Below are positions 5,518 through 40,697 of a DNA stretch of 64,000 nucleotides, one piece after another. The notes under the pieces are model-generated. The model did not search any database. It saw only the letters and a program-made list of their open reading frames with translations, and was not told the DNA's origin. How positions within the stretch are numbered: position 1 is the stretch's first letter; each line of letters begins with the position of its first letter. Location: the sequence record MN091626.1; one strand, written 5' to 3'. Made by a program: the position numbers and the translations under genes.

Positions 5518-6072
5518 GTGTTTAAAATTTATCCTGATTACGATGAATTTTTAAAGAAAGAATTAGACCGCTTTGGAATTGATACGGATAGTATGATGTA
5601 TCATTCTGATCTTAATTACAATTATTGTAAAGAGAAATTAGAATCAATTGAAAAGGAAGATAAAGAAATGGAATTTAATTATTTGAATTTAGAAGATATA
5701 TCTTTAAATAAAGAAGAGACAAGTGGAGTTATGACTATAAGAGAATTAGTAAATACTATTGATCACTTGATATATACAGAAAATGAAGTTACACCTTTAT
5801 ACTACTTCTTTATGGATAAAATTGATTCACTTCCTATGATTAATATGATTACTTATAAAAAGGCAGCTAACACATTCTATGAAGAATATAAAAGATATAA
5901 CACTGAAAATCATTCAGCTTATATAAATATTAAGGGAGAATGGAAACAGTTATCATTTAATCAATTTAAAGAATCTTTAAAAGAAGTTTTATTATCTTCA
6001 CATAAAGAAAGCAATGTTGATAAATTATTTAAAGAGTTAAATAATTTAGCTGTAAAAGATAATTTTTCATAA
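5518..6072 (+). CDS. Hypothetical protein; degenerate KEY..VKxxF-type C-terminus (LAVKDNFS)
   Basis: 184-aa ORF; C-terminal comparison. Confidence 0.7.
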   Translation: MFKIYPDYDEFLKKELDRFGIDTDSMMYHSDLNYNYCKEKLESIEKEDKEMEFNYLNLEDISLNKEETSGVMTIRELVNTIDHLIYTENEVTPLYYFFMDKIDSLPMINMITYKKAANTFYEEYKRYNTENHSAYINIKGEWKQLSFNQFKESLKEVLLSSHKESNVDKLFKELNNLAVKDNFS

Positions 6073-6101
6073 TTGCTCTTAGATCAAAATTAGTAATAAG
6101 C

Positions 6102-6152
6102 ATATATTATAAATATGAGACAATGTTCATTAACTTGATCATTGTCTCATAT
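6102..6152 (+). promoter_or_regulatory. Early-type promoter plus 13-bp leader hairpin
   Basis: ATATATTATAA then ATATGAGACAATG/CATTGTCTCATAT. Confidence 0.7.
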
Positions 6153-6191
6153 ATTGTTTTATTTTTTATAAATAAGGAGATGAATTGGATA

Positions 6192-8069
6192 ATGGAAAAT
6201 AATACATTAAATTCGTATATAAAGGAAGATTTTAAATATTTTAAAGATGATAAATTAGAAATTGATGAAATATTTAACTTTAAAGATGATAAGACTAAAG
6301 AAAAATTTGAAACGTTTTTTAATGGAGTTATATACACATTGAAAAATTTGAATTATGTTGAATTATCTGAAATGTATAATGAATCAATTAAAGAGAAAGG
6401 TAATACTCAAGTTAAATCTGAAAGTTATATAAATTATTTAAATAATGAATTGAAAAATAAAAGACTAAATAAAGAAACTAAAAAACTTTATAAAGATTTA
6501 TTAATGACTTTAGAAGATGATTTGAAAAGATATAATGCTAATTTAGATGACAGCATTATAAATAAATTATTCAAAAATAAGTATATATCAATATCTTATT
6601 ATAGTTTAATAGTACCGTATAATATTGCTAACGAAATTGAATTTAATAAAAACTATTATATCTTTCTTGAATTAGAAGATTTTGTTAAATTCATAGTATT
6701 TCCGTATTATCAGCTTTTATACCTATCTAAAAATAATTTAAGAAATATTTATATAAAGAATACAGATATAAATCTTCATGATTATTTTATTGATATAATA
6801 AAGAGTTATATTAAAAATTTAATAGATAATAAAGATGTAGATACACTAAAGGATTTATTAGATGTGTTAACAAATGAGCACGAATATCTAAGATCCCCAA
6901 AATATACAGACTATAGAAAAGGTAATGGTAGAAATTTATTTGAGTTGCTAATAGATATGAATTTCAATGAATTTAAAGACTTATTATATGAAATGATATA
7001 TATTATAATGAATAATAATCTAAAAAAAGAATTACAAGTAGAAATGAATTATGATATATACAAACACAATATATTTTTAATAAGTTTAATGAATGATGAA
7101 GTAGAAAGTCATAGACAACCTAAATTTAATGATAAATTTTTAATAGAGAGTAATAATACAATTAGAGCTACTGCAAGTGCAGATTTATACAGTAAAAATA
7201 ATTACTACCAAAATAACTTATTAGGACACTATATTAATGATCTATATGTAAATAAAAATAAAATAAATAAATTTAAAAGGGTTAATAAAGTTAGAAGTCT
7301 TAAATCTTTTATTTATTTAACTAACCAAAGATGCATTATCGGTGGTGAGTCATATTATAAATATCTATATAAATATTTATTTGATCCAAGTAACTTAACT
7401 AGAGAAGAGTTTGAAGTATCTACATTATTAATTAAATTGATAACTTGTAAGTCTAGTAATCAATTAAAGAAAGTTATGGAGAATGCAAAAACCAACTCTA
7501 TATTAAATAATCTTTTATTTGAAACAGAAATTAATGATATAATTAAAATTGGTATAGAAATGAATATTAATACTATATTCAATGAAAAGGGTTTAAGTAA
7601 AATTAATACAGTTGATTTAACTGTAGGAAATATTGTAAAACCTTTGTTATATAATAACGCAAATGATTATGAAGAACAAACAGAAATCATTAATTCAATA
7701 TTTAAAAATTTTACTTATGATATAGATATCAATTTTGATAAATATCATTACAAAGATTTAGATGAATATTTTGAAAGTAGATTAAATTTAGGTCTTTTAA
7801 AAGAATCAAATATAGATATTAGTATTAATATTAATTATAGTAAAATTGCAAAAACTATTGTAAATAATATTAAAGATAAACTTAGAGGAAAATATGATTT
7901 TGAAAAGAATGAGTTTATTATTACTTATGATAAGATGAATATTACTCGTTTAACTTCTACAGAGTTCTGTAATGGTTTATGTGAATATTTAAGTAAATAC
8001 TTCCCAGAAGAAGCTAAAAAGTTAAATAAGAGTTTTAGAGCTGAAATTGTAAATACAATGTTTAGATAA
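6192..8069 (+). CDS. Large hypothetical protein (start re-called from 6123 to 6192)
   Basis: AAGGAG SD at 6174-6179; 6123-6190 is hairpin/leader. Confidence 0.75.
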   Translation: MENNTLNSYIKEDFKYFKDDKLEIDEIFNFKDDKTKEKFETFFNGVIYTLKNLNYVELSEMYNESIKEKGNTQVKSESYINYLNNELKNKRLNKETKKLYKDLLMTLEDDLKRYNANLDDSIINKLFKNKYISISYYSLIVPYNIANEIEFNKNYYIFLELEDFVKFIVFPYYQLLYLSKNNLRNIYIKNTDINLHDYFIDIIKSYIKNLIDNKDVDTLKDLLDVLTNEHEYLRSPKYTDYRKGNGRNLFELLIDMNFNEFKDLLYEMIYIIMNNNLKKELQVEMNYDIYKHNIFLISLMNDEVESHRQPKFNDKFLIESNNTIRATASADLYSKNNYYQNNLLGHYINDLYVNKNKINKFKRVNKVRSLKSFIYLTNQRCIIGGESYYKYLYKYLFDPSNLTREEFEVSTLLIKLITCKSSNQLKKVMENAKTNSILNNLLFETEINDIIKIGIEMNINTIFNEKGLSKINTVDLTVGNIVKPLLYNNANDYEEQTEIINSIFKNFTYDIDINFDKYHYKDLDEYFESRLNLGLLKESNIDISININYSKIAKTIVNNIKDKLRGKYDFEKNEFIITYDKMNITRLTSTEFCNGLCEYLSKYFPEEAKKLNKSFRAEIVNTMFR

Positions 8070-8085
8070 AAAGGAGAAATTAAAA

Positions 8086-8643
8086 ATGGATGTTAAAAAA
8101 ACGTTTAATGCAGATATAATGAAAAATGATGAAAAGGCTTTCAATCATATTATTAAAAATTGTATGTCTTTTTATGATAAAAGAAAAATGTATAATGAAG
8201 TTAATGATGACAATGAAGTTTTAACATATATATTTAATAACCACAAAGAAGAATTAATGAAAAGAAATAATGGTTTAATAGCTATATCAAAAGATCTAAA
8301 AGATCTTATTAGATACACCGTTGTCGATTATTATTTATTAAGTTTATTAAGAGATTTTTCTTCATTTTCAGTTGGGTACCGGGATATTGAAAATTTTGTT
8401 GAGATGTTAAAAATGGAGTTATTTAAACCAGATCAAGAAACTTTAAGTCAATTTTCTTCAAAAGATGATATAATATATTTATATTATAATACAACACTAA
8501 ATAAAATAATAAAAGTTGATCCTATTATGTACTTAAAAGCACTAATGGAGTATGTTAAAGAAGAAAAAGAATTCTATGGAGATCTATCTATAGAATTTGA
8601 AAAAGAAGTTAAAAAATATTTAGTTGAAAAGAACTTTAAATAA
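8086..8643 (+). CDS. Hypothetical protein, C-terminal-tag family (KKYLVEKNFK)
   Basis: AAGGAG SD; C-terminal motif. Confidence 0.8.
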   Translation: MDVKKTFNADIMKNDEKAFNHIIKNCMSFYDKRKMYNEVNDDNEVLTYIFNNHKEELMKRNNGLIAISKDLKDLIRYTVVDYYLLSLLRDFSSFSVGYRDIENFVEMLKMELFKPDQETLSQFSSKDDIIYLYYNTTLNKIIKVDPIMYLKALMEYVKEEKEFYGDLSIEFEKEVKKYLVEKNFK

Positions 8644-8660: not shown

Positions 8661-9395
8661 ATGAATGGATATGGAAAAATTAATAAAAAAGTTTTTAATA
8701 TAGATCGTAGCAACTTTGAAGTAGTTTTAATGGACTACATGGACACTAAACAGATGAAAAATAATTATAATAGGGATATAACCGATCAAGAAAAAATTGA
8801 TCGGTTAATACCTTTAATTAAACAACAAGAAAATGAACAAGATGAAGGTAGAATATTTGAAAATGCTAGAAGATATGAACTTCTTTTAGCTAAAACATTT
8901 GAATACTCTCTTAATGGAAAATTAGAATTATACAAATTAAAAGAAGTATTAAATTATTACGAAGAAAAAAATCTTTTTAATATAGTATATCCAAATTTTA
9001 GATACACTTTTAATGTAGAATCTCCCAGTAAAGAGTATTCCTTATTATCTTTAAAAACTAAAATATTTTTAATTATAGAAACTATTATAGATTTTATTAA
9101 AAATGATTATGTAGAAGATAATCTTTCTATTAAGTTAATTTTAAATTCAGAAGAAATAATGATTGATACCCTTGATTTAAACGAAAAATCTTTGTGTAAT
9201 ACCTTTAGTCTACAATATACAAATGAATTGTTATCTTATAATGGAGATTATTTGTTCTCACATGATCAAATAAAACGTATAGAAAATATAAATAATATTT
9301 TATTTAACGATATATACAAAGATAAAGATAAAGAAATTTTAGAATTTTTATCTAAGAAAGTAAAAAATAAATACATTTCAAAATATTTTAAATAA
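8661..9395 (+). CDS. Hypothetical protein, degenerate C-terminal tag (KYISKYFK)
   Basis: AAGGAG SD. Confidence 0.8.
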   Translation: MNGYGKINKKVFNIDRSNFEVVLMDYMDTKQMKNNYNRDITDQEKIDRLIPLIKQQENEQDEGRIFENARRYELLLAKTFEYSLNGKLELYKLKEVLNYYEEKNLFNIVYPNFRYTFNVESPSKEYSLLSLKTKIFLIIETIIDFIKNDYVEDNLSIKLILNSEEIMIDTLDLNEKSLCNTFSLQYTNELLSYNGDYLFSHDQIKRIENINNILFNDIYKDKDKEILEFLSKKVKNKYISKYFK

Positions 9396-13081: not shown

Positions 13082-13528
13082 ATGAAATATTATAAGGTTA
13101 ATTATAATGGTATATTGAAAATATTGAATCTAGATGATTTTGAAGATGATAGAATTATTGAAACACTTAGTAATATTGAGTTATATTTAAAAGAAGATGA
13201 AGAAATTAGATTATTGGATTTATTTAAAAAGCCAACTATAGCAATGGACACTCGAATTACAAAAGAAAAAGATAACCTTTATATGAATGGTCATCTCTTT
13301 TTAGAAGTTGAGAATGCATCATGTAAACTATGGAGTTACCATATTAATTTAAATGGTGACGAAACATTAAATGAAATATATGAAAGGATATATAACGGAT
13401 ATGATAAAAATTTCTCTTTTAATAAAATGAGAGAAGATGGTCTATTATTTCTATATGAATATGAACATTATACAGAAATATCTGAAAAAGAATATAAAGA
13501 AAATAAAGTTAAAGAAAATTTTAAATAA
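13082..13528 (+). CDS. MKYY..KEY..VKENFK family protein
   Basis: Starts MKYYKVN, ends ISEKEYKENKVKENFK. Confidence 0.85.
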   Translation: MKYYKVNYNGILKILNLDDFEDDRIIETLSNIELYLKEDEEIRLLDLFKKPTIAMDTRITKEKDNLYMNGHLFLEVENASCKLWSYHINLNGDETLNEIYERIYNGYDKNFSFNKMREDGLLFLYEYEHYTEISEKEYKENKVKENFK

Positions 13529-14004
13529 AAAAGGAGATTTTAAATTATGAAATATTACAAACTAACAGACAGAGGTATTGCGGATATATTTAATATTGGT
13601 GGAATGGATTATGAATTTATGGATTTCTATGAGGACAATAATCACATATTCAGAAATGAAAGTCTTTATCTAAGAGAGGATGAAGTAATACCTCTCTTCA
13701 GTATTATTGAATATGATGTTACTAAAGAATGTGTAATAACTAAAGAAGAAGGCAAATTAGTCGCAAAAGGTAAAACTAAAATAGACGTAGAAGATGGGTA
13801 TGCTGATTTAATTTCCATTGATTTAGATTTTAATGAAGATAATACAAGTTTAAGCGATTTATATAAACAGTTAGAAGAGTACTGTGAAAATGAAAAATTT
13901 GTAGTGAAAGATCGTATAGAAAAACTTTTCGAGGGTTCTGATTATAAAGTTGTCACTGAAAAAGAATATAAAGAAAATAAAGTTAAAGAAAATTTTAAAT
14001 AAAA
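13482..14004 (+). repeat. Two identical 49-nt copies (13482-13530 and 13956-14004) spanning gene 3' ends
   Basis: CTGAAAAAGAATATAAAGAAAATAAAGTTAAAGAAAATTTTAAATAAAA at both sites. Confidence 0.85.
13547..14002 (+). CDS. MKYY..KEY..VKENFK family protein
   Basis: Starts MKYYKLT, ends VTEKEYKENKVKENFK. Confidence 0.85.
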   Translation: MKYYKLTDRGIADIFNIGGMDYEFMDFYEDNNHIFRNESLYLREDEVIPLFSIIEYDVTKECVITKEEGKLVAKGKTKIDVEDGYADLISIDLDFNEDNTSLSDLYKQLEEYCENEKFVVKDRIEKLFEGSDYKVVTEKEYKENKVKENFK

Positions 14005-14018
14005 GGAGGTATTAAATT

Positions 14019-14477
14019 ATGAAATATTATGAATTTAATAAAAAGGGAATTATTAAAATATTAGGATTGGACACAGCTTATTTAAAAGAAGATGAAGATA
14101 TTTTTAGAGAAGGAAATCTTTATTTAAAAGAAAATGAATCAATAAAGATAAAAGATATTATAACAAATAAAAAAGATATGGAGTTTAATTGCAGTATTTA
14201 TGAAGGGTCTGAAGATAACTCATTAATGAAAGCTAATTTAACTTTCAGACATGGATCGGGACAACTTTTATTGAATATTGAATATATTGATTTAAAAGAA
14301 ATAAAAGATCGCACTGTTGAAGAAGTTTACAAATACGCTAAAGATTTAGTTTTAAATAAAACATTTTCTTTTAATAAAGCTGAAGAGCTTGGTATATGTT
14401 TATATGAAGGAAAAGAATATGAAGAAATTACTGAGGAAGAATATAAAAAATACAAAGTAGAAAATACTTTTAAATAA
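14019..14477 (+). CDS. C-terminal-tag family protein
   Basis: MKYYEFN ... ITEEEYKKYKVENTFK. Confidence 0.85.
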   Translation: MKYYEFNKKGIIKILGLDTAYLKEDEDIFREGNLYLKENESIKIKDIITNKKDMEFNCSIYEGSEDNSLMKANLTFRHGSGQLLLNIEYIDLKEIKDRTVEEVYKYAKDLVLNKTFSFNKAEELGICLYEGKEYEEITEEEYKKYKVENTFK

Positions 14478-14497: not shown

Positions 14498-14947
14498 ATG
14501 GAAAAATATTATAAATTAACAGCGGAAGGTATATTTGATGTTTTCAAATTAGATAAAAAACACATTATATTCCCAGAAGATAAAAATACAATAATAGATT
14601 TCAGATCAAAGGAAGAACGTATAGAGAAAATTAATGAACTTATATACTTTAAAGATAATCAAGAAATAACAATAAACTCATTATCTAATTTAACAGACAA
14701 TATCGTAATAGATAAATCAGGTTCTAAATATACATTTAACCATTTAATAGAAATATCATTCACTACTTTTAGTCATAAAAAAAGATATAACAAAACAATC
14801 AATGTACCGAATGTATTTAAAGGAACTGTAAGAGAAAATAGTAGTAGAAGTGCCTTAGATATACCGATAGATATCAACAATATTGATAAAATAGAATTAA
14901 CATTTAAAGAATATAGAGATCTAGTAATAAAAGAAACTTTTAAATAA
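14498..14947 (+). CDS. C-terminal-tag family protein
   Basis: MEKYYKLT ... LTFKEYRDLVIKETFK. Confidence 0.8.
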   Translation: MEKYYKLTAEGIFDVFKLDKKHIIFPEDKNTIIDFRSKEERIEKINELIYFKDNQEITINSLSNLTDNIVIDKSGSKYTFNHLIEISFTTFSHKKRYNKTINVPNVFKGTVRENSSRSALDIPIDINNIDKIELTFKEYRDLVIKETFK

Positions 14948-14963: not shown

Positions 14964-15413
14964 TTGAAATATTATAAATTAAATAAGGATGGTTATATTA
15001 AATTTTTAGGGTTAGATGTTTTGCCTGGACTTAAAACCTCAATTGTTGAAAAAGAAATAAAAAATAAAAACTTCATTGTCAAATATTGCAATGGAGCAGA
15101 TTTTTGTTTTACATTAGATGAAATTAATAAAATGAAAAACAAAGATATTTACCCTAAACTTGGATTTGAAAGTCTAACTGAAAAAGTTAATCATGAAATA
15201 GAAAATAATCCAATAGTATTTGTTAATAGAAAATATGAAGATGCTAAAGCTTTAATTCATGTAGATTTAATTATTAATAATGAAGAAACTACATTAATGA
15301 CTATGCCAAGATTTAATATTAATTTTTTAAATCATAATTTGTATATGGAACACTTTGATGAAATAACAGAGAAACAGTATAAAAATATTATGGTAAAAGA
15401 TTCATTTAAGTAA
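14964..15413 (+). CDS. C-terminal-tag family protein (TTG start)
   Basis: MKYYKLN ... ITEKQYKNIMVKDSFK. Confidence 0.85.
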   Translation: MKYYKLNKDGYIKFLGLDVLPGLKTSIVEKEIKNKNFIVKYCNGADFCFTLDEINKMKNKDIYPKLGFESLTEKVNHEIENNPIVFVNRKYEDAKALIHVDLIINNEETTLMTMPRFNINFLNHNLYMEHFDEITEKQYKNIMVKDSFK

Positions 15414-15422: not shown

Positions 15423-15473
15423 TAAATATATATTATAAAATTGTGAAAGATGTATGATACTTATACATCTTTC
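15423..15473 (+). promoter_or_regulatory. Early-type promoter plus leader hairpin
   Basis: TAAATATATATTATAA then GAAAGATGTAT/ATACATCTTTC. Confidence 0.7.
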
Positions 15474-15495: not shown

Positions 15496-15924
15496 GTGAA
15501 AAAGATAATGAGTTCTAATTTTGATTATTATATATTGCAATCGAGTATTTCAGAAGCTAGAAAAAAGATTAAGAATAATCTAGATGTAAATGGATATATG
15601 GTTATAAGACAAATATTTTTCAGTCATTTAGATTATAAAGATTATTATAATATGTATCATAAAGTAAATAATGTAGAAGATTATTACAATGATATTATAT
15701 TAGAAAGTATTAAGGATATTATATTTGATGAAGAAGGTAAACTTAATGAAGAAGTAGCATTTAGTTTAATTAAAGGTTCTAATTCGAATATATGTGCTTT
15801 AATTAAAGATAATAAAGGTAATTACAAAATTTATAAAAAAGATAAATATGTAATTAAAGCTATAGAAGATTTATTATCTGAGAAAGATTATAAAAGAATA
15901 TTGGTTAAAAATACTTTTAAATAA
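15496..15924 (+). CDS. C-terminal-tag family protein
   Basis: Ends LSEKDYKRILVKNTFK. Confidence 0.8.
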   Translation: MKKIMSSNFDYYILQSSISEARKKIKNNLDVNGYMVIRQIFFSHLDYKDYYNMYHKVNNVEDYYNDIILESIKDIIFDEEGKLNEEVAFSLIKGSNSNICALIKDNKGNYKIYKKDKYVIKAIEDLLSEKDYKRILVKNTFK

Positions 15925-15969: not shown

Positions 15970-16635
15970 TTGGTGATTTTATTGATAAAAATGCATTTAA
16001 TAAACTTTCAAAAAAGGTCTATGAATAGTTATAAGAAGAATTTAAACACAATTGTACTTTTCATAGATTATGATAAAAATATTTTCAACCAAATTAATAA
16101 TCAATTAGATATAGATGTATTAGGTAATGATACTATAAGATTAAATAATGCTAATTATTCATTAATGTTAGATGAGAAGATTTTTAGTTCTGAAAGGACA
16201 ACAATTGATTTCTATAATAAAATAGTAAATAATGATATATTAAATATTATTAAAGAAAATATATCTAATGTAGATAATTATTCTAAATTAAAAGAAATCA
16301 ATAATATGACTGATAGTGAATTTAATGATATTATTAATAAAGATAATTTATTTAAATGTCAAAATAAATACTTCAGTATGAATAAAATACCTTATATAGA
16401 AAAAGAAATACCTGAAAGTTTTTATCTAGATCATTTTAAAGAGATTAATTTAGATTTTATATTTGAGAAGCTTTTTGAAGAGAATAGAGAAGATGAAGAA
16501 AAATTAAAGTACGTTTATACTTTAGCTGAATTATTTCTAACACTCAAACAAGGTAAGAATATATTTTATAATTATAATAAAGAGGTAGATAAGAAATATT
16601 ATAGATCTATATTTATAAATTCTTTATTTAATTAA
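15970..16635 (+). CDS. Hypothetical protein, divergent C-terminal tag
   Basis: Ends VDKKYYRSIFINSLFN; start uncertain. Confidence 0.7.
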   Translation: MVILLIKMHLINFQKRSMNSYKKNLNTIVLFIDYDKNIFNQINNQLDIDVLGNDTIRLNNANYSLMLDEKIFSSERTTIDFYNKIVNNDILNIIKENISNVDNYSKLKEINNMTDSEFNDIINKDNLFKCQNKYFSMNKIPYIEKEIPESFYLDHFKEINLDFIFEKLFEENREDEEKLKYVYTLAELFLTLKQGKNIFYNYNKEVDKKYYRSIFINSLFN

Positions 16636-17250: not shown

Positions 17251-17634
17251 ATGAAGAAATTTTTAGTATTACCATTATTATTCGTTTTATTATTAACAGG
17301 GTGTTCTCAAGCTGATAAAGTTAGTCAGAATATGTCTGAAGAATCAGATAATTTTAATGTAGTTAGAAAAGTAACTGTCATTAATGCAATTAAGAATGAT
17401 ATAATATTCCAAATGTCTGGACGTATGTCTATTAAAGCAGACAAGGAAGACAATCAATTGGAGATAATTGTGGAAAATGAAGATGGTAAATATCAAAAAC
17501 ATATCATTGGTTTATCTGATAATGTTTCATATACTGTTGAAGATGTTACAACTAAGAATGTAAGTAAATATCAATATGAAATTAATTATAATCCTAAAAT
17601 GTGGATTCCTGCAAAACCAGATTATAAAGATTAA
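17251..17634 (+). CDS. Phage lipoprotein
   Basis: Signal peptide with lipobox LTGC; ADKVS.N.S.E.DNFNVVR and HIIGLSDNVSY pattern recalled from a widespread Firmicutes-phage lipoprotein family. Confidence 0.8.
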   Translation: MKKFLVLPLLFVLLLTGCSQADKVSQNMSEESDNFNVVRKVTVINAIKNDIIFQMSGRMSIKADKEDNQLEIIVENEDGKYQKHIIGLSDNVSYTVEDVTTKNVSKYQYEINYNPKMWIPAKPDYKD

Positions 17635-17659
17635 TATAATAGAATGGAGAGATTGATTT

Positions 17660-25923: not shown

Positions 25924-25961
25924 AGAAAATTTTCTATGATCCAAAAAAAAAAATTAAAGGT

Positions 25962-26594
25962 GTGGTGTATATGATTAAAGTCAATGAACTATTAACACAA
26001 GTTAAAGAAATAAAAACAAATGACAGTTATACGAAATTAGTAAACGAGTATAGAGATATTATCAATGAAGAATATATATCTTATAAACCATTAAAAGATT
26101 ATTACAATTTCATTATATATTATTTAGAAAAATCTAGATATCAAGCATTGAAATCTAACAATTTTGATGAATCTAATTTAAATATCAAAACATTGATAGA
26201 CGATCTAATGACATTAAACAATATTGTTAAATCTGATATTTTTGATACTAAAGAAGTAATCAGATCTACTGGTTTTAAATTAACAAATGGTAGTACATTT
26301 GATAGAATTATTAAATACATTAAAGATAAACTAGATAAATTAATTATAGAGATAAATTCAGATAATTATAAATATCAAAATATCTATTTCTATCTACCTG
26401 AGCTAAATAATCTATTGCATAATACAATTCATATAGAACGTGTTTTAGATAAAAATAAAGATAATGTAGATATTATTAATATAGATAAATATAATTTATT
26501 TGAAATGATGCCTTGTAATGATATTATGGATAAAGATGAATTTTATATAATGGTTAATCATTTATATGATTTAGGATCTTTAGAAAAAGCGTAA
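25962..26594 (+). CDS. Hypothetical protein
   Basis: AAAGG SD; follows TTTTCTATGATCC motif. Confidence 0.75.
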   Translation: MVYMIKVNELLTQVKEIKTNDSYTKLVNEYRDIINEEYISYKPLKDYYNFIIYYLEKSRYQALKSNNFDESNLNIKTLIDDLMTLNNIVKSDIFDTKEVIRSTGFKLTNGSTFDRIIKYIKDKLDKLIIEINSDNYKYQNIYFYLPELNNLLHNTIHIERVLDKNKDNVDIINIDKYNLFEMMPCNDIMDKDEFYIMVNHLYDLGSLEKA

Positions 26595-26683
26595 CGTGTA
26601 ATAAAATAAGTATATATTATAATTATGAAGAAAGAGTTTATCATTAATTCTTTCTAATATAAAATTAAATGGAGGAATTTATT

Positions 26684-26854: not shown

Positions 26855-26881
26855 AGGAGGAAAGAGGATAATTGTTTTAAA

Positions 26882-26932
26882 GGTCTAATGAAAATGGATC
26901 AAGTTCATTAGGTCTATAATTTTCTATGATCC
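26882..26932 (+). other. Predicted H-type RNA pseudoknot, copy 1
   Basis: 11-bp stem with G-U pairs; loop GGATCA complementary to downstream TGATCC. Confidence 0.5.
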
Positions 26933-26956
26933 AATAATAAAAAGGAGTTAAAAACA

Positions 26957-27271: not shown

Positions 27272-27395
27272 ATATTCATATAATCAGTTGAATTTGAAAA
27301 AGCGTAACAATATGGTTTTTAATTATATATTATAATTATGAAGAAAGAGTTTATCATTAACTCTTTCTAATAAAAATTAAAGGAGAAAAATTATT

Positions 27396-27566
27396 ATGAA
27401 AAACTTAGTATTGAAATCAGCAGTTGGATTTGCGGCAGGTATTGTATTAGGATTAGTGAGCAATAAAATTGATGCGTACACATTAGCAAAAATTGAAGAG
27501 AAAGAAGTATTAGATAAAGCAGATAGTATTATTAATAATTAATTAGGAGTTGAAAAGGATAATTGA
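27396..27566 (+). CDS. Small single-TM protein (56 aa), not in ORF track
   Basis: AAGGAG SD; MKNLVLKSAVGFAAGIVLGLVSNKIDAYTL. Confidence 0.8.
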
Positions 27567-27571
27567 TTTAA

Positions 27572-27623
27572 AGACCTAATGGACACGGATCAAGTTCATT
27601 AGGTCTATAATTTTCTATGATCC
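27572..27623 (+). other. Predicted H-type RNA pseudoknot, copy 2
   Basis: 12-bp stem; same loop-tail GGATCA/TGATCC pairing. Confidence 0.5.
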
Positions 27624-27658
27624 AATAATAAAAATAAAAATGAAAAGAGGAAATTAAA

Positions 27659-28836: not shown

Positions 28837-29343
28837 ATGAAAAAATTATTAATGGTGTTAGCATTAATCGCTTTAATCGCAGTTATCGGAGCAGCAGGAA
28901 TATTTGGTTATAGTAGTTTTAAAAGCTTAACAGTCAATAAAGAAGATAGTAAGACTGAAGAAGTATCTAAAAAGAAAGAAGACAAAAAAGAAAAGAAAGA
29001 ACAAGAAGAATCAGATAATGTAGAAGTAAATCAACAACAAGATCAAACTCAAGAAGTAAATAATAATGAACGACAAAATCAAACTACAGAAGATAGTAAT
29101 ACAAATGTACAACAAAATCAACAACAAGAACCAGTAGTTGAAGAGAAAACTCAAGTAACAGATAATGAAGGTAATAATATAGATGATATGGATTCAGAAG
29201 AATTTATTTCTAAATATACAGAAGGAATGGATGAAGAAGAAGCTCAAACAGTAAAAGACATGGCTGAAGAAGATTCAGGATATGAAGATTTCTTACGTGG
29301 ACAAGTAGAAGCTAGACAAAACGGACAAGGCGGAAATTACTGA
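28837..29343 (+). CDS. Signal-anchored surface protein, Q/N/E-rich, paralog 1
   Basis: MKKLLMVLALIALIAVIGAAGIFGYSSFK. Confidence 0.85.
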   Translation: MKKLLMVLALIALIAVIGAAGIFGYSSFKSLTVNKEDSKTEEVSKKKEDKKEKKEQEESDNVEVNQQQDQTQEVNNNERQNQTTEDSNTNVQQNQQQEPVVEEKTQVTDNEGNNIDDMDSEEFISKYTEGMDEEEAQTVKDMAEEDSGYEDFLRGQVEARQNGQGGNY

Positions 29344-29366: not shown

Positions 29367-29834
29367 ATGAAAAAAATCTTAAGTATTTTAACAGCGATAG
29401 CTTTAATCACAGTTATTGGAGCAGCAGGAGTATTCGGCTATAGTAGTTTTAAAGAATTAAATAATAGTAAAGATAGTCATAAAGTTGAAACAAGTAAAAA
29501 ACAAAAAGAATCAGATGATAAAAATAACACTCAACAACAAGAACAAAATACATCAAAAGAAAACAACAATATCCAACAACAATCAAATGAAGATAGCCTA
29601 ACAGAAAATATGGATGAAGAATATAAAAAACAACAGGAAATGTATGAAAAGCAATCAAAAGGTGAAGCTCCAGAACCGGGTTCTATAATTGGCAACCCAC
29701 CAAAAAATTATGAAACTCCAGAAAAAGATAAAATAACTATAAGTGAGTTAAGAGAAGTTTTAGGCGATGATATTGATGAAAGTAAAATTGATGAAGCAAA
29801 AGCGTCTGGCGAATATATTAATGATGAAGAATAA
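29367..29834 (+). CDS. Signal-anchored surface protein, paralog 2
   Basis: MKKILSILTAIALITVIGAAGVFGYSSFK. Confidence 0.85.
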   Translation: MKKILSILTAIALITVIGAAGVFGYSSFKELNNSKDSHKVETSKKQKESDDKNNTQQQEQNTSKENNNIQQQSNEDSLTENMDEEYKKQQEMYEKQSKGEAPEPGSIIGNPPKNYETPEKDKITISELREVLGDDIDESKIDEAKASGEYINDEE

Positions 29835-29865: not shown

Positions 29866-30342
29866 ATGAAAAAATTATTAGTAGCATTATCAATCTTAGC
29901 AGTAATTGTAGTATTAGCAGCGGCAGGTGTGTTTGGATATTCAAAATATAAAGAAGCAGAAATGAAACAACATAATTTAGAAACACAATTAGAAGAAAAA
30001 AATTCCAATGAGCAAACTAATGAAAACGATCAACAACAAGAACAATCAAATACAAATGAATCTCAAAATCAAGAAAATAGTTCAACAAAAGACAATAACG
30101 ACAATAAACAAAAAGTATCTAGGGACAATGTATTTGACTATGCTTTAGCTGCAGTAAATGAAGTAGGTGACGCTGATTTAATGAAATTCCAAGAACCTTC
30201 TTACAGTGATGGTGTATGGACAATTGACGCTAATAATAAATCTGGTTCAGGGTCTAATACTATAAAAGTATACGATGATGGCTGGGTACAGATATATGAT
30301 GGATCTGGTGAAATAGCTCATGAAACAAAAATAGAACTATAA
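29866..30342 (+). CDS. Signal-anchored surface protein, paralog 3, with globular C-terminal domain
   Basis: MKKLLVALSILAVIVVLAAAGVFGYSKYK. Confidence 0.85.
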   Translation: MKKLLVALSILAVIVVLAAAGVFGYSKYKEAEMKQHNLETQLEEKNSNEQTNENDQQQEQSNTNESQNQENSSTKDNNDNKQKVSRDNVFDYALAAVNEVGDADLMKFQEPSYSDGVWTIDANNKSGSGSNTIKVYDDGWVQIYDGSGEIAHETKIEL

Positions 30343-30687: not shown

Positions 30688-31389
30688 ATGACATTAATTG
30701 TGTATGAAATTTCAGTAGCTCTAATGTTTTTAATTATAATATATTTTTCATTCAATACAATATATAAAACATTAGTAAGTGCGTATAATGAAAAATTAAA
30801 AGGAAAATTCTTCTCTACATCATTTTTCATTTTTAGTTTATTGTTTCCAATAATGATTATTGTATTTTACAATATAGACGGGATAAATATTAAAATAGAA
30901 TATGTTTTATTTTATTTTATACTATTAATAATTAACTTTGTATTAAATAAATTTCTTAAAGTTCATGATATTATAGTATATACATCATTATTCTATTCTT
31001 TATTTATAATGAATTATCATTATGAAATAGCTAATGATTTATATTTTGCTATATTTATTGTAATAATCAATTTAATAATTCCATTAATTAAAATTGAATT
31101 ACAATTAGTAGAAATAATAATTCAAACTGGTGGAGAATATAAAGATATAGACATGAAAAAGAATATAGTTAGACAGAATTTAAAAATAGTTAATTTAAAT
31201 GATAACAATACAAAATTTTCATTAGATGATTTTCTTGAAAATAAATTTAATAATAATGAAGAATCAATAAATACTTTCTTAGATGAAATGATTGAAAAAA
31301 TATATTCTGAAAGAATAAATATAAAATTGTATTGTTATCATATATTAATGGGATTATTAACTATATACTTTTTATTATCTCAGATTTAA
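30688..31389 (+). CDS. Polytopic membrane protein
   Basis: About 6 hydrophobic segments. Confidence 0.7.
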   Translation: MTLIVYEISVALMFLIIIYFSFNTIYKTLVSAYNEKLKGKFFSTSFFIFSLLFPIMIIVFYNIDGINIKIEYVLFYFILLIINFVLNKFLKVHDIIVYTSLFYSLFIMNYHYEIANDLYFAIFIVIINLIIPLIKIELQLVEIIIQTGGEYKDIDMKKNIVRQNLKIVNLNDNNTKFSLDDFLENKFNNNEESINTFLDEMIEKIYSERINIKLYCYHILMGLLTIYFLLSQI

Positions 31390-31431
31390 ATATATATTAT
31401 AAAAATGAGTAATATTAATTAATATTACTCA
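31387..31431 (+). promoter_or_regulatory. Early-type promoter plus perfect palindromic leader
   Basis: TAAATATATATTATAA then TGAGTAATATTAATTAATATTACTCA. Confidence 0.7.
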
Positions 31432-32774: not shown

Positions 32775-33314
32775 ATGAAAAATAATAAACCGAGTTTAAT
32801 TACATGGTTATTATATTATTGTGACAATGATTCAATTAATAACGCTATTAATTCTATATGTATATTTATTATCTCTACATTAATTATATCTTATACAATT
32901 TTAATTAGTATGTTTTCAAATTTTTCATTAATGTCAAAATTAATAATATTTTTAATTGTGGTTTTGATATCTATATTTGTTATCAAAATAAAATATGATT
33001 ATTTTAATTTTAGAGACATATATGAGTACACAGACTTAAATCAATGTTTTAAGATTGAAGGAGAATACTATTCAAAATGGTATATTAATTTATGTAATAT
33101 AAAAAATTATACAATGTTCATACCAAGACGTTCTAAGGGTAGAAATCATTGGATTAATTCTATAGAGTCTAATCGTCTTTTAACATATAGAGAATTCTTA
33201 AGATATAAAAAGAATAGACTTAAGATAGAAAAAGCAAATCAGAATATTGAAGAAATAAATGAATTTCAGAAGTATATGGAAATAAAAAATAAGAAAAGAG
33301 AGGGGAACATATGA
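32775..33314 (+). CDS. 2-TM membrane protein, paralog of 33311
   Basis: Shared NHW.N.IESNRLLTY.EFLRYK.N.LKIEK. Confidence 0.8.
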   Translation: MKNNKPSLITWLLYYCDNDSINNAINSICIFIISTLIISYTILISMFSNFSLMSKLIIFLIVVLISIFVIKIKYDYFNFRDIYEYTDLNQCFKIEGEYYSKWYINLCNIKNYTMFIPRRSKGRNHWINSIESNRLLTYREFLRYKKNRLKIEKANQNIEEINEFQKYMEIKNKKREGNI

Positions 33315-33934
33315 AAAATAGAGTAAGTATATTTGACTGGTATCTTTATAAAACAGGTTATGATACAATGATACCTTTTATAATTAAAATAATAATGATT
33401 CTCGGATCAATATTATTATTCTTTTCATTACTAGGAGTTAGCTATAAATTAGCATTATTATCTTTATTTGTATTAGTTCCAATAATAATTTCTTCTATAA
33501 TTATAGGTGAAAAATATTTTAATTCAAGAATAATGGAAGAGTATCAACATTTAAATAAATCATATAAGTATAAAGGAAAATATTATTCTGCATGGTATAT
33601 AATATTAAATAGTAAAGATCCATACTTCAAAGAGTTAATGGATATTATGGGAAATGACGGCACTCTTAGTGAAGACCGTAATATACTTTATAATCTAGAC
33701 GGACTATATATGCCTCCATTTAAAAAAGGAGTTATAGAAAGTCATGAAAGGAAATATAAAAATCACTGGAAAAATAATATTGAGAGTAATCGTCTTTTGA
33801 CATATATCGAATTCTTAAGATATAAAGAGAATAAACTCAAGATAGAAAAATCAAATGAAATGATTAAAGAAATAAAAGAATTTCAAGATTACTATAATTT
33901 AAACAATAAAGGAGAAAATAAAAATGAACACTAA
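33311..33934 (+). CDS. 2-TM membrane protein, paralog of 32775
   Basis: Shared C-terminal block. Confidence 0.8.
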   Translation: MKNRVSIFDWYLYKTGYDTMIPFIIKIIMILGSILLFFSLLGVSYKLALLSLFVLVPIIISSIIIGEKYFNSRIMEEYQHLNKSYKYKGKYYSAWYIILNSKDPYFKELMDIMGNDGTLSEDRNILYNLDGLYMPPFKKGVIESHERKYKNHWKNNIESNRLLTYIEFLRYKENKLKIEKSNEMIKEIKEFQDYYNLNNKGENKNEH

Positions 33935-34405: not shown

Positions 34406-34864
34406 ATGAGATACTTTAAAGGTATAGTAGCAGGAAAAGACTTTTTCTTAAAAGCAGATAATGAAGAAAATGCCATTAAGGAATTAGCATCAAAAGAAAT
34501 TAATTCTATAGGATCTTTTACAATGTTAAGTAATGAAAAACAGAAATACCTAATAATTTTCTTTAATGAAGATGAAGATAAATTTGTTGTTGGAAATGGA
34601 TTAGAATCATATATATCATTAGACAGTCTTAAATCTGAATTAGAATCTAAAGATTTAGAATGTTATTATTTAGATTTAGGTAATACAGATAATATCGAGA
34701 TAAACGGTATTATAAAAAATCAAGAATACACATTAACAGAAATAATAATGGAAAGTATTAAATTAACTATGAATGATTTTTATCAACAAGTTATAAATTC
34801 TGTATTAACTGAATTAACTGAAAAAGAATACAAAAATTCAATAGTTGTTAAAAATTTTAAATAA
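34406..34864 (+). CDS. C-terminal-tag family protein
   Basis: MRYFK ... LTEKEYKNSIVVKNFK. Confidence 0.85.
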   Translation: MRYFKGIVAGKDFFLKADNEENAIKELASKEINSIGSFTMLSNEKQKYLIIFFNEDEDKFVVGNGLESYISLDSLKSELESKDLECYYLDLGNTDNIEINGIIKNQEYTLTEIIMESIKLTMNDFYQQVINSVLTELTEKEYKNSIVVKNFK

Positions 34865-35776: not shown

Positions 35777-36262
35777 ATGAATTATTTAAAGAATGAAAAA
35801 GAGGAGGTCTTTCCAGTCAATGAAGAAGGAATGGAGAATATTATATTCTTTCTTCTAGACTACTCACAGAAAAATGATTATAATACAATGAATATAATTA
35901 AAGAAATAAATGATCACGTGATGAAAGGCGAAAATATAAGTAATAAATTTATTAATGAAAGTACAAAAGAAGTGATATTAACATTAGGTAAAGTAAAAGG
36001 TAATTTAACTAATGAATTAGCTAGAAGCGGATATATAGTTAATTTCTCTAGAAATAAAATATCATTATCGATATATGTAAAAAATAATAATTTCAAATTA
36101 GTAAGAATTTCAGATCATAATATTAATAAAAAAGTAAATAAGAAAGGAGTAATTAGTAATAGGTTTGACTATCAAGTTAAAGCTGACAATAAATTGGTAA
36201 GTAATAAATCTTTAAAGAAATATGGTATTGATGTATCAGAAGGAATTTATTATTTAGATTAA
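35777..36262 (+). CDS. Hypothetical protein
   Basis: AGGAG SD; LVRISDH motif. Confidence 0.75.
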   Translation: MNYLKNEKEEVFPVNEEGMENIIFFLLDYSQKNDYNTMNIIKEINDHVMKGENISNKFINESTKEVILTLGKVKGNLTNELARSGYIVNFSRNKISLSIYVKNNNFKLVRISDHNINKKVNKKGVISNRFDYQVKADNKLVSNKSLKKYGIDVSEGIYYLD

Positions 36263-36284
36263 TAAGAGTATTGAATTAGAAATC

Positions 36285-36332
36285 AATTATATATTATAAT
36301 AATGAAGATAAATATTATTAATATTATCTTCA
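36285..36332 (+). promoter_or_regulatory. Early-type promoter plus leader hairpin
   Basis: AATTATATATTATAA then TGAAGATA...TATCTTCA. Confidence 0.7.
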
Positions 36333-36357
36333 ATAAAAAAAAAAGGAGTTTTATATT

Positions 36358-36734: not shown

Positions 36735-37346
36735 ATGAATTATTTTGAATTGGAATTTACAGGTTTAATTGATAACAATCAATTAGATAATGGAGTTTTA
36801 CACAAACAAGAAAATGAAGAAATTGAATCCGGTCTTTTAAATATGATTCTATTTAAATTGTATCTAAAAGAATTCTATAATGATAATATGGATGATAGTG
36901 ATTTATGTAAAAAACTAAAAATAGAAATAAGAAGTGTTCATAGCTATAGTGATTCAGAAATTTATATTAATGAGGACTTTGCTGAAATATATGATGGTAT
37001 TAATCCGAATAATAACGTTAAATCAAGAAAAATAAATAAAAATTATGAATATTTATTTAAATTTATTAAGGATAATATAAATGAGAAAGATTTAAGTAAT
37101 ATACACGTAATTAAATTTACAACATTTGAAATAGAACGGTATAAGTCTGTTGTACGTTCTATATACTCAGCTAAACTTAAAATTAAAACTAGTAAATTCA
37201 TTAGTCGTTATAGAACAACAAAAGAGTTAGTATTCTATGATATTTCAAGCGAAAGTTTATATAGATTGTTGAAAAATACAAATAGAATAAGAAATATAAC
37301 GGAAAAGGAATATAAAAAAGAATTAGTTAAAAGGAGTTTCTTATAA
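36735..37346 (+). CDS. C-terminal-tag family protein
   Basis: MNYFE ... ITEKEYKKELVKRSFL. Confidence 0.85.
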   Translation: MNYFELEFTGLIDNNQLDNGVLHKQENEEIESGLLNMILFKLYLKEFYNDNMDDSDLCKKLKIEIRSVHSYSDSEIYINEDFAEIYDGINPNNNVKSRKINKNYEYLFKFIKDNINEKDLSNIHVIKFTTFEIERYKSVVRSIYSAKLKIKTSKFISRYRTTKELVFYDISSESLYRLLKNTNRIRNITEKEYKKELVKRSFL

Positions 37347-37894
37347 TGTATGAAGTTAATAAAAAATTTAAATATGCTAAAAGAGATAAAGAATTCACAT
37401 TATTTCACCATAAATCAAAAGAAGAAATAACTGATTCATTTATAATTAATAATTATATTTCATATGTATTATATCAATGCTACGAAAGAACACCAGGAAA
37501 TGCAGAAGTTTGGTTGGAAATTAATGACATAAATAATATAAAAGGTGATTTCTTATTTAAATTTATGTTTGACAACAGACCTTCTTTTGGTTCTAATTAT
37601 TTTCCTAAGTGTAAATTAAATATACAAGATAACAGTGATAATAATATTGTAACTATTGAATTTAGTGATAAATATAAAAGACATAATTTTATTCTAGAAG
37701 AAATATCTAAATTTAATAATGTTCATATTAATTTTTATGAAGAAGTATTATTTACTAATGAAGATGAAGAATTCAAGTTATTAAAGAATGTATTTAAAAC
37801 TGATAACATTAAATATTACCAAAATAAAGATTTAATTAGTTATATTTCAGACAAAGAAGCTAGAAAAATTTTAGTAAAAGAAAACTTTAAATAG
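37346..37894 (+). CDS. C-terminal-tag family protein
   Basis: Ends ISDKEARKILVKENFK. Confidence 0.85.
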   Translation: MYEVNKKFKYAKRDKEFTLFHHKSKEEITDSFIINNYISYVLYQCYERTPGNAEVWLEINDINNIKGDFLFKFMFDNRPSFGSNYFPKCKLNIQDNSDNNIVTIEFSDKYKRHNFILEEISKFNNVHINFYEEVLFTNEDEEFKLLKNVFKTDNIKYYQNKDLISYISDKEARKILVKENFK

Positions 37895-37910: not shown

Positions 37911-38444
37911 TTGAATAAATATTTTAAATTTAAATTAAATAATAAAAGTGATTACGATGTATTTAAATTTTCAGGAAATGAAGAAGAAATAAGCGATTCT
38001 AAAATTATAGAATCTTATTTTGCTTATATGTTTGATTATTATATAAGTGAAGCAATACCTGATACTAGCATGATAAATATTACGGTATTTACTAAAGATG
38101 AAAGAAAAAGATTATTTAGATTTTCTATAGATAAACCTCCAGTTTATATAGAAGAGCCTTTTAGTACTTTATTTATGATTGAAAATGATGAAGATAAACA
38201 AGTCAATTTTAGAGATTTTAATGAAATTAAAAAGTTTATACTTCAAAAGATTATGGAATTAAATGAAGACGAATTTTATATTTACATTGATTATAACTTT
38301 GATTTTTCTTATAAAATAGATTACGATGATGTATTTGATAAAATATTATTTACTAAAAATAATCTAAATCTTTATTTATTCTTTATTAAAGAAACAGATG
38401 AAAATGAATATAAAAATTATCTAGTAAGAGAGAATTTTAAATAA
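37911..38444 (+). CDS. C-terminal-tag family protein
   Basis: MNKYFKFK ... TDENEYKNYLVRENFK. Confidence 0.85.
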   Translation: MNKYFKFKLNNKSDYDVFKFSGNEEEISDSKIIESYFAYMFDYYISEAIPDTSMINITVFTKDERKRLFRFSIDKPPVYIEEPFSTLFMIENDEDKQVNFRDFNEIKKFILQKIMELNEDEFYIYIDYNFDFSYKIDYDDVFDKILFTKNNLNLYLFFIKETDENEYKNYLVRENFK

Positions 38445-38461: not shown

Positions 38462-39235
38462 ATGGAATATATTATGATGAATGAATTATTAACAAAAAAT
38501 GATTCATCTGAATTAAAACTAAATATGGTTAAACCATATAAAGAAGAAGACTTTTTCAATTTCTTTTTAAACTTTATTATAGAATATAATTCATATCATA
38601 TAGGAAATTATAAATACTTTTATAGTATAAACTCATTATCGGATTATAATTCAGATTATCAAATAAATGGAAATCCTTATGTGCCATTTGAGGAAGGAAT
38701 AAAAGTAAATGAAGTCATTCATATTTATAAAAATAAATTATTTAGAAATATAAGTAAAGACATTGAAAATAGAATAACCTTACTTTATGTAGAAGACAAA
38801 GAAGATGATATTTCCTATTATATATTAATATCTAATTACTTTAATAGGAAATTTAAAAAAGAATATAAAGAAGAACTTCCCGAAAAAGAAAAAGTATTAT
38901 CTAGACTTATAGTAGGATCTTTTCTAAATGAAAAGATTTTATTAGATTCACATTCAGAATTTTTAGTTATTAAAGATAAAGAAAAATTAAGCAATTTAAT
39001 TACTAATTTAATAAAAAATCAAAAATACAAAATTTTAAACTTTGATTTCTTAAGCAATAGTGAATTAAAATATAATAGGATACTATTTAATAAAAATGTA
39101 TATGATAATAAATTAGTCTTGAAATATTTAAAAGGAATAAGTTACAAAGACATTATTGATAAAGATAAAGAAAAAATTACGTTTATAAATGAAAAAGAAT
39201 ATAAAAAACTAGCAGTGAAAGAATCATTTAAATAA
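38462..39235 (+). CDS. C-terminal-tag family protein
   Basis: Ends INEKEYKKLAVKESFK. Confidence 0.85.
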   Translation: MEYIMMNELLTKNDSSELKLNMVKPYKEEDFFNFFLNFIIEYNSYHIGNYKYFYSINSLSDYNSDYQINGNPYVPFEEGIKVNEVIHIYKNKLFRNISKDIENRITLLYVEDKEDDISYYILISNYFNRKFKKEYKEELPEKEKVLSRLIVGSFLNEKILLDSHSEFLVIKDKEKLSNLITNLIKNQKYKILNFDFLSNSELKYNRILFNKNVYDNKLVLKYLKGISYKDIIDKDKEKITFINEKEYKKLAVKESFK

Positions 39236-39246
39236 ATAATAAATAA

Positions 39247-39306
39247 TCTCATCCATTCATTATATAATAACTTTTAATTATATAATAATTTTTAGAATGG
39301 ATGAGA
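39247..39306 (+). promoter_or_regulatory. Large-loop hairpin overlapping the RBS of 39314
   Basis: TCTCATCCATTC/GAATGGATGAGA 12-bp stem. Confidence 0.5.
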
Positions 39307-39313
39307 TGCTTTT

Positions 39314-39973
39314 ATGAGTAATTATTTATATCGTTTTAACAAAGAGAATGTAAATATCTTCTATCATAAAAGGACTAATAATGGTCATAAAATGTTATTT
39401 AATAATAGTAATGATAAAGATAGATCTATATACTTAATAAATACTGATGAAGAAATCAATAATATGGAACTAGTATCTAAATATATTGCTGGAAAAGTAT
39501 TTGAAATACTAAATCAAGAAAATATGAAAATAGTACATATGGATTTCTTTAATAGTAAATTAGAATTCTTTATAAGTAGATCATCCAAGAATAAATATAT
39601 AATGAATATGTATTTTAGTTTAAAAAGTTATAATGATCTAATTGAAAATGAAAAAGAATTTATAGATAGTGTTAATGAACTTAATTTAGACTTTTTAAAA
39701 TCAGTTTCTTTAGATCAAGACAATAATCATGTATTAGATATGACATTAATATTTTTAATAGATAAAAATAAGATAGATGAATTTATTAAAAATCTATTTT
39801 ACATTAATTATATAAAGATAATAGAATTTATAATAGATACTATATCTGTATATGCAGATGATTATAAGAAATTTAATGAAGAAATAAATATTCTTTTGGA
39901 TCATAGAAATTTTATAGAAGAGATAACATATAAAGAATATAAAAAGATAATGACAAAAGAGATGTTTATTTAA
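39314..39973 (+). CDS. C-terminal-tag family protein
   Basis: MSNYLYRFN ... ITYKEYKKIMTKEMFI. Confidence 0.85.
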   Translation: MSNYLYRFNKENVNIFYHKRTNNGHKMLFNNSNDKDRSIYLINTDEEINNMELVSKYIAGKVFEILNQENMKIVHMDFFNSKLEFFISRSSKNKYIMNMYFSLKSYNDLIENEKEFIDSVNELNLDFLKSVSLDQDNNHVLDMTLIFLIDKNKIDEFIKNLFYINYIKIIEFIIDTISVYADDYKKFNEEINILLDHRNFIEEITYKEYKKIMTKEMFI

Positions 39974-39986
39974 GGAGAAATTAACT

Positions 39987-40697
39987 ATGAAGGTTTCAGC
40001 CAATAAAGAATTATTAGGAAATAAAGTTATACCTTTAGGGTTTAAACAACTTAATGACTTGTATAAAGATCATGATTATGTATATTTAAGAATTCCTGAA
40101 ATATTTAATGTATTTGATAAGTATCAATTTAAAGATGATAAATTTGTATATATTAAAACAGAAATAAAAACCAGTACTATTGTAGATTTAATAGATTCTT
40201 TATCAGGTGGTCATAATTGGTTAGTAAATGAATATATTTCTAATGATATACTAAATATACATTATAAAAAGAAAAATTTATTAGATATTTCTAACAGTGA
40301 ATATAAAAGTCTAGAGGAAACAAGATCTCAACTAGATTTAGAATTGGAATTCATAAGTAGTAATGAAAAACAAAGAAAGCAATCTAATATTTTAATAAAG
40401 GATATTCATAAAGAAATAAATTATATAAGGAATGAATACACAAAAGTATTCACTCTTAAGAAAAGTAAAACCAGAAATAATAAACCAATAAAAATAAAAA
40501 TTAGAAATTTATATGATGAAGATCCAATATCTATATTAAAAATAATATTAGACTTAGGAGAAGAATATTGTATGAATAGTACTATATTTAACGCATTCAC
40601 TTATTCATTAATGTTAACAAATAATTTAGATTTCATAGACGAAAAAGAATTTCAGGATATAGTTAAGAAAGAGAAAGTGAAAAATACTTTCATTTAA
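39987..40697 (+). CDS. C-terminal-tag family protein (extended tag)
   Basis: Ends IDEKEFQDIVKKEKVKNTFI. Confidence 0.8.
   Translation: MKVSANKELLGNKVIPLGFKQLNDLYKDHDYVYLRIPEIFNVFDKYQFKDDKFVYIKTEIKTSTIVDLIDSLSGGHNWLVNEYISNDILNIHYKKKNLLDISNSEYKSLEETRSQLDLELEFISSNEKQRKQSNILIKDIHKEINYIRNEYTKVFTLKKSKTRNNKPIKIKIRNLYDEDPISILKIILDLGEEYCMNSTIFNAFTYSLMLTNNLDFIDEKEFQDIVKKEKVKNTFI

Follow-up and report, generated by a model that had tools for sequence, protein, structure and literature searches.

A conserved C-terminal tail marks a putative, rapidly diverging early gene family in PALS_2-type Staphylococcus jumbo phages

Poxvirus ankyrin and PRANC (F-box-like) families carry a conserved C-terminal module on bodies with recognisable repeats, and their host partner is known. 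The targeting peptides of T4 internal proteins and the inner-body paralogs of phiKZ-like phages are N-terminal, late, cleaved by the head protease and present in virions. In the hyperplastic early regions of T4-type phages, promoter-stem-loop cassettes recur and the repeated unit is intergenic DNA, while type IV secretion effectors bear C-terminal signals that are loose, disordered and compositional. Here we describe a set of open reading frames (ORFs) of Staphylococcus phage PALS_2 that end in a shared C-terminal tail and that can be compared with all of these systems. The stretch analysed, hereafter the window, comprises 64,000 nucleotides (bases 62001-126000 of MN091626.1, which it matches at 100% identity by megablast); positions refer to the window unless given as genome coordinates.

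As in the poxvirus PRANC families, a small C-terminal module sits on variable bodies within a large, fast-evolving viral multigene family whose copy number and integrity vary by strain. Unlike those genes, which belong to eukaryotic viruses, the phage bodies are orphan reading frames (ORFans) and the partner is putative, the comparison being one of description. Like the packaged proteins of T4 and phiKZ, those of the PALS_2 set come from a large phage and are dissimilar apart from a short terminal peptide that they have in common, or from membership of paralog families; the PALS_2 element, however, is C-terminal, lies behind early promoters and is absent from the virion protein list of phage DC4. 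Arrays of small, fast-changing early ORFans, repeated early promoters and promoter-plus-hairpin cassettes (repeat families D5, D7 and D15) recall T4-type hyperplastic regions, but the unit repeated in PALS_2 is a peptide under protein-level selection. The likeness to type IV effectors concerns the manner of working only, in that many dissimilar proteins carry a common C-terminal signal, which in effectors is read by one machine; the PALS_2 tail is instead a sharply conserved, predicted strand-helix structure, and no secretion machine is implicated. No relation of sequence or fold to the poxvirus families was found, with Foldseek against PDB and BFVD.

PALS_2 belongs to the S6 / MarsHill / DC4 group of Staphylococcus aureus jumbo phages, which carry split multisubunit RNA polymerase genes and are kin of Bacillus phages AR9 and PBS1 and of Listeria phage LPJP1. 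Every tail-bearing ORF listed in a first-pass annotation of the window is annotated as a hypothetical protein. The reading we favour, with a probability of roughly 45%, is that these ORFs form an expanded early paralog family that evolves by birth and death and retains a conserved terminal handle, which probably contacts a common partner. The tails would then mark a single clade-specific, hugely expanded early gene family of S6/PALS_2-type Staphylococcus jumbo phages, with 33-36 copies in PALS_2, equivalent to ~13% of its coding sequences (CDS), of which 18 lie in the window, in tandem arrays behind what appear to be (early) promoters of the virion RNA polymerase.

The family was delimited with a profile of 18 columns, built from 12 tails and run on 1114 six-frame ORFs from the window and three further genome pieces (26-224 kb in total), membership being set at a score of at least 3 bits for a match ending at the stop. 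The scan, which had been proposed by the first-pass annotation with a stop required directly after the match, returned 33 PALS_2 members, and phenylalanine (F) occupies position -2 from the C-terminus in all 33, though the profile does not require it. For all 23 matches above 9.7 bits the end coincides with the stop codon, and the best internal match reached 9.0 bits. A simpler end pattern (aliphatic, then basic or E/Q/V, two free positions, F and any last residue) was found in 34 of the 222 gene-like ORFs of genome 26-224 kb, against 0.72 expected from its internal frequency; with T permitted at -6 the number of pattern members rises to 36, the set used for later tests. F at -2 alone occurs in 56 gene-like ORFs of this region, where ~11 are expected. 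Canonical tails are absent from the first 49.9 kb of PALS_2, tail members are absent from its late/structural region (223-268.7 kb), and in the syntenic 50 kb of LPJP1, which is equally AT-rich (26% GC), F stands at -2 in 0 of 45 genes. A chance origin of the shared tail is excluded.

Among the 33 members, -1 is K in 23; -5 is K in 25 and R in 3; -6 is V in 27 and I in 5; -10 is K in 27 and R in 3; -11 is Y in 13, I in 9, V in 5 and F in 3; -12 is E in 24; -13 is K in 24; -14 is E in 22; and -15 is T in 10, D in 10 and S in 4. The conserved block also reaches upstream into a hydrophobic strand and totals ~22 residues, longer than the 16 first proposed. Translation confirmed the tails originally quoted for twelve ORFs and for 39314 and 39987. 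The earlier count of 13-18 tail proteins agrees with the window, where all 18 listed ORFs carry the tail (in weaker form at 5518, 6123, 8086, 8661 and 15970), and falls short of the 33-36 in PALS_2 as a whole. Nor is the family confined to two blocks, as initially described: outside the window, about 20 members make up a third, larger array (genome 179.5-205 kb), and a few more stand alone near genome 38-40 kb and 170 kb. About 20 further ORFs, among them 35977, 129059, 145545 and 169055, have F at -2, mostly followed by K or R, but none of the other tail residues, so that a less strict rule for the C-terminus may reach beyond the 33-36 clear members.

Members are mostly 140-290 residues (aa) long and lie on one strand, forming tandem arrays at 5.5-9.4, 13.1-16.6 and 36.7-40.7 kb of the window, all on the plus strand, and in the third genomic array. 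The first array opens at 5518..6072 with a 184-aa member whose weak tail (F at -2, last residue S; 4.5 bits, match ending 1 residue from the stop) is retained in the ortholog of phage PB50 at an overall identity of 42%. The long outlier at 6123..8069 (648 aa; annotated start 6192) has a divergent tail in which -6 is V and -2 is F, shares 36% identity in the body and 69% over the last 16 residues with its PB50 ortholog, and gave zero Pfam or PHROG matches. It is followed by a 185-aa member (8086..8643; 7.9 bits, match ending at the stop) and by a probable member of 244 aa (8661..9395) whose divergent tail (F at -2, K at -1) scores under the profile threshold.

The second array begins with the first gene past DNA ligase, the 148-aa subfamily 1 member at 13082..13528 (27.9 bits). 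Subfamily 1 continues with 13547..14002 (151 aa), identified by the tail profile and modelled with AlphaFold2, with 14019..14477 (152 aa), identified by profile and hhalign, and more distantly with 14498..14947 (149 aa; hhalign probability 47-87% to subfamily 1). The best profile match, at 35 bits, is the 149-aa member at 14964..15413, which has only its first 18 residues and its tail in common with subfamily 1. The array ends with a 142-aa member of unique body (15496..15924; 29.7 bits), preceded by an early promoter motif at 15424-15443, and a probable member of 221 aa (15970..16635) whose divergent tail (F at -2) is retained in PB50. A solitary 152-aa member of unique body lies at 34406..34864 (26.2 bits), with 23% identity to PB50 in the body and 62% in the tail. 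The last array of the window is opened by a 203-aa member (36735..37346; 28.7 bits) and goes on with two paralogs recovered by the tail profile and hhalign (99.9%), at 37346..37894 (182 aa) and 37911..38444 (177 aa). Next come a 257-aa member of unique body at 38462..39235 (27.5 bits; 34% identity to PB50 in the body, 75% in the tail), a 219-aa member with T at -6 and I at -1 (39314..39973; 27.7 bits) and a 236-aa member with a 4-residue insertion in the tail (39987..40697; 7.3 bits, match ending at the stop).

Comparison with PB50 indicates at which level the tail is maintained. Between PALS_2 and PB50, synonymous and non-synonymous differences are 0.46 and 0.21 in family tails, 0.51 and 0.35 in family bodies, and 0.41 and 0.16 in other genes. 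Because synonymous divergence is equal in tails and bodies while non-synonymous divergence is lower in tails, selection on the peptide holds the tail. This pattern contradicts the proposal that the repeat acts at the level of DNA or RNA, as a promoter, terminator, coupling element or recombination cassette, or simply results from AT-rich composition, an explanation we regard as hardly credible. It would draw on the ~23% GC content of the genome, which makes the tail codons the commonest codons, and on the appearance of the tails as direct repeats of 48-64 nt at 69-91% identity. However, the exchanges observed in the tail are conservative (K/R, V/I, Y/I/V/F), codons of the conserved columns follow genomic usage (F is TTT in 31 and TTC in 5) and all three stop codons occur; moreover, the AT-rich LPJP1 region has no tails, and the gap from tail to next gene varies from -1 nt to 800 nt.

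The bodies change at roughly twice the rate of neighbouring genes. Median identity to PB50 is 38% for family bodies and 71% for neighbouring genes (p = 3e-4), with RNA polymerase and ligase at 84-97%; within the family, identity is 66% over the last 16 residues and 38% in the bodies (p = 2e-4), and non-family genes have no such terminal excess. The S6 counterpart of 13547 is only 33% identical, yet the RNA polymerase subunit is 100% identical. The ratio of non-synonymous to synonymous substitution rates (dN/dS) against DC4 is 0.26 for the family and 0.13 for other genes, which indicates real genes under relaxed or diversifying selection rather than noise. Such fast body diversification is what would be expected of the diverse anti-host payload that had been proposed. 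In DC4 (locus L013, 11867-12760) two family neighbours are fused into an annotated 297-aa ORF in which the upstream tail end is lost, a metagenomic fragment reads through from one member into the next, and tails are cut short in MarsHill and Madawaska orthologs. Birth-and-death evolution through duplication, fusion, tail loss and very rapid body divergence would account for these features.

To compare bodies, we cut the last 20-22 residues and applied all-vs-all BLAST, iterated HMMER and hhalign with profiles of PALS_2, DC4 and PB50 orthologs. Homology was found only among 13082, 13547, 14019 and 14498, extending to the first 18 residues of 14964, and between 37346 and 37911; the earlier statement that the bodies do not align therefore stands for most members and fails for these. 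All other family pairs could not be told from controls with any of the three methods. Given how fast orthologs diverge, loss of body homology signal is to be expected. Pfam domains were absent from all 30 members tested, PHROGs gave zero credible matches for two members (13082 and 38462), and PADLOC gave none for ten, one weak match (E = 9e-4, 38 residues) being disregarded. An aromatic pair occurs within the first 22 residues of 20 of 36 members; among 166 other ORFs, 35 have one (odds ratio 4.7, p = 1e-4).

The lack of Pfam domains, the N-terminal motif in about half of the members and the tandem arrays together favour divergent paralogs over the portable tag on unrelated proteins that the first-pass annotation proposed. 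A portable C-terminal signal for sorting, docking or degradation, recognised in trans and borne by genuinely unrelated effectors, is thus improbable, although the tail is invariably C-terminal, with nothing after it, the bodies are largely unalignable and tail variants occur on proteins of 92 and 648 aa. The tail-coding ends of 13082 and 13547 (13485-13525 and 13959-13999) are perfectly identical over 41 nt, while the proteins are only ~33-40% identical. This identity may reflect gene conversion of the tail, with a chance probability of ~2% by our own codon-bias estimate; it would also suit a portable signal, as bodies ~33% identical suggest that the tail is exchangeable as a unit. Against such a signal stand the absence of the tail from any recognisable enzyme or domain, the co-conserved N-terminus in half of the members, the array organisation and the structural features described below. 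Two paralog groups in the window lack the tail, one at 28837-29343, 29367-29834 and 29866-30342 (hhalign 98-99.8%) and the other at 32775-33314 / 33311-33934 (36% identity by BLAST).

Searches for relatives found the family in few phages. With one family member as query, tblastn against 50,697 phage records matched only Staphylococcus jumbo phages, and so did the 24-residue tail alone. The tail profile, run against 1.84 billion representatives, gave 4 matches, every one from the S6/PALS_2-type clade, and when a subfamily 1 profile was searched, the 12 proteins recovered came without exception from the same phages or from unnamed short contigs. Two giant-virus contigs found when loci related to subfamily 1 were sought (30% identity over 56 residues) were regarded as spurious. 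On these sequence comparisons the tail family is limited to S6-like staphylococcal jumbo phages. The literature searched gives no account of it, and the MarsHill and DC4 papers do not mention it.

The AlphaFold2 model of 13547, built with 13 relatives, is of good quality (predicted local distance difference test, pLDDT, 82.5; predicted template modelling score, pTM, 0.73). It shows, in order, an N-terminal strand and helix, a beta-meander, two helices, a strand at residues 133-136 and a final helix at 138-149, which is the tail. Over residues 121-150 the pLDDT runs from 87 to 93 to 85, the strand passes directly into the helix, and no disordered linker precedes the tail in this model, which represents one subfamily only. 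For a free docking peptide or degron, as once envisaged, the extreme C-terminal position and free carboxylate fit, but the linker-free continuity of the tail with a confidently modelled globular fold does not. On our reading of the sequence, a helix capping box (Ser/Thr-x-x-Glu) would be formed by Ser/Thr at -15 together with Glu at -12. The tail is likewise predicted to be a helix, as first supposed, but not an amphipathic one in the classical sense: its helical hydrophobic moment (0.21-0.23) is lower than the proteome background (0.27-0.30), its mean hydrophobicity is -0.23 to -0.35, and the hydrophobic columns lie on two opposite faces, so that a sandwiched helix fits better than an amphipathic tag. 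A membrane-targeting amphipathic helix was rejected on the same low moment, which also counts against a portable signal. Foldseek with the 13547 model gave no match in PDB (best E = 0.58, TM score below 0.3). A second AlphaFold2 model, of 37346 plus 37911, was too poor to use (pLDDT 46).

These structural data bear most directly on a purely structural role, in which the members are divergent paralogs of one fold and the tail and N-terminal strand are its folding nucleus, surviving because the remaining sequence can vary freely, with no shared partner. We consider this possible yet somewhat less probable than a handle that contacts a partner. The continuity of the tail with the fold at high pLDDT speaks for it, as do the Ser/Thr-x-x-Glu capping and the preference for E and K, both suited to intrinsic helix stability, the tandem arrays with their common N-terminal motif, the absence of a foreign domain from every member and the persistence of orthologs with truncated tails. 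A helix packed on the body should nevertheless change along with it, yet no other segment is as well conserved, on bodies at 23-40% identity. Foldseek and hhalign detected no common fold, and body length spans 92 to 648 aa. Since the tail stays constant while the body on which it would pack is replaced, we favour, by a small margin, an external constraint over a purely internal role.

Purifying selection on the protein keeps a C-terminal module of ~22 residues, predicted to consist of a short beta-strand and a capped helix, in which -6 is aliphatic and -2 is always Phe; an N-terminal aromatic strand is conserved too in about half of the members. On the handle reading, the two termini would close the fold as a compact, structured handle, leaving a hypervariable middle to meet changing host targets, and the handle would offer a common contact surface to one shared, putative partner of phage or host origin. 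Phage GroEL was considered as a clade-specific partner and rejected, GroEL also being present in LPJP1, AR9 and PBS1, all of which are without the tail.

Several observations weigh against this reading. It has one confident model behind it, and packing of the tail on the N-terminal strand is a guess. The conserved polar columns may reflect merely helix capping or stability, and Foldseek against BFVD with the 13547 and 37346/37911 models gave only models of the same subfamily. When tails were removed, family pairs behaved as controls did in hhalign (median probability 0.2%), and common descent of all members, across subfamilies, is only presumed here. About 45% of members are without the N-terminal motif, and sizes of 92, 95, 395 and 648 aa fit a portable element equally well. 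Orthologs in MarsHill and Madawaska are without the last six residues and are yet still open. Finally, the shared partner stays putative, and docking to it is something that we infer.

The promoter context suggests early expression, in agreement with the original assignment of these ORFs to early genes. The early promoter consensus of AR9 is known (PMC5312081), and exact copies of this AR9-type motif lie on the plus strand of the window at 3240..3259, upstream of an RNA polymerase gene and of the 5.5-9.4 kb members; at 15424..15443, directly upstream of member 15496; and at 31388..31407, heading the unit that holds 34406. A copy with 1 mismatch and a downstream hairpin (repeat families D5/D7) at 36285..36304 (plus strand) heads the 36.7-40.7 kb array. 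A further window site lies at 35364 on the coding strand, and sites outside the window lie at genome 179438, 190650, 193736 and 198735 (all exact or with one mismatch). At locus L007, 7 sites were counted against 0.66 expected; the full motif is enriched, while its 8-mer core alone is not. The MarsHill authors reported the same early promoter motif upstream of 29 genes. Early timing of the tail family is thus suggested by the motif.

The promoter motif also occurs within repeats. A four-copy cassette, in which a short inverted repeat comes directly after an early-promoter motif, occurs at 25541-25594, 26578-26663, 27291-27376 and 36255-36340 (D5, D7, D15). Downstream of small genes lies an 82-nt direct repeat, 91% identical between 26862-26943 and 27553-27634 and present in part at 25928-25958; it folds into a 12-bp hairpin (-16.3 kcal/mol, z = -1.3, not significant) and has no Rfam match, and a search of the window against Rfam gave zero matches overall.

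Early placement also bears on the suggestion that the tail is a capsid-loading or ejection signal, sending proteins to the prohead for injection with the DNA. T4 internal proteins do carry short shared terminal peptides that address phage heads, and the aliphatic / Ser-Thr / acidic triplet at -16 to -14 may resemble the class of head-protease sites. The tail arrays, however, lie behind early promoters, among genes for non-virion RNA polymerase and replication, and the DC4 virion list from liquid chromatography-mass spectrometry, a shallow survey of only 26 peptides, names 15 proteins without a family ortholog among them. In AR9, 41 of the 43 proteins of the virion belong to the late class (PMC5312081). 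A loading role fits these data poorly and is very unlikely.

Other features of the window concern its neighbourhood. A 127-aa gene at 17251-17635 is 97.6-99% conserved across jumbo phages and has ~84% nucleotide identity to the Twort-like S. aureus myophages phiSA_BS1, phiSA_BS2 and JDF86, in which RefSeq names a recombination directionality factor; the gene looks as if it had been exchanged between unrelated staphylococcal phage groups. At ~41000-42000 the GC and AT skews change sign and gene orientation flips, from plus-strand early genes up to ~41.4 kb to mainly minus-strand genes from ~41.5 to 60 kb. PB50 (locus L015) has a homing endonuclease in a split RNA polymerase gene and an HNH gene beside ligase, both missing from PALS_2. 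PALS_2 has been listed as a probable uracil-DNA phage without a recognisable uracil-DNA glycosylase inhibitor (PMC10303552); a tail-family ORFan is a conceivable candidate for that role.

The S6/PALS_2 group comprises the only known Staphylococcus aureus jumbo phages, and ~80% of their genes are without an assigned function. A single, simple sequence rule sorts 33-36 PALS_2 ORFans, ~13% of 279 annotated CDS, into what appears to be one early family. This family is the fastest-evolving part of the genome, a signature to be expected where phage and host proteins meet. One partner would open the function of the whole set if the tail is a common handle. A doubtful but more far-reaching extension is that the tail could be an address read in trans, by which one receptor of phage or host would recognise ~35-45 early proteins and sort them, place them on a scaffold or, at the early-to-late switch, jointly destroy them. 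If true, a phage would be tagging its entire set of effectors, and no system of this kind has been described among bacteriophages.

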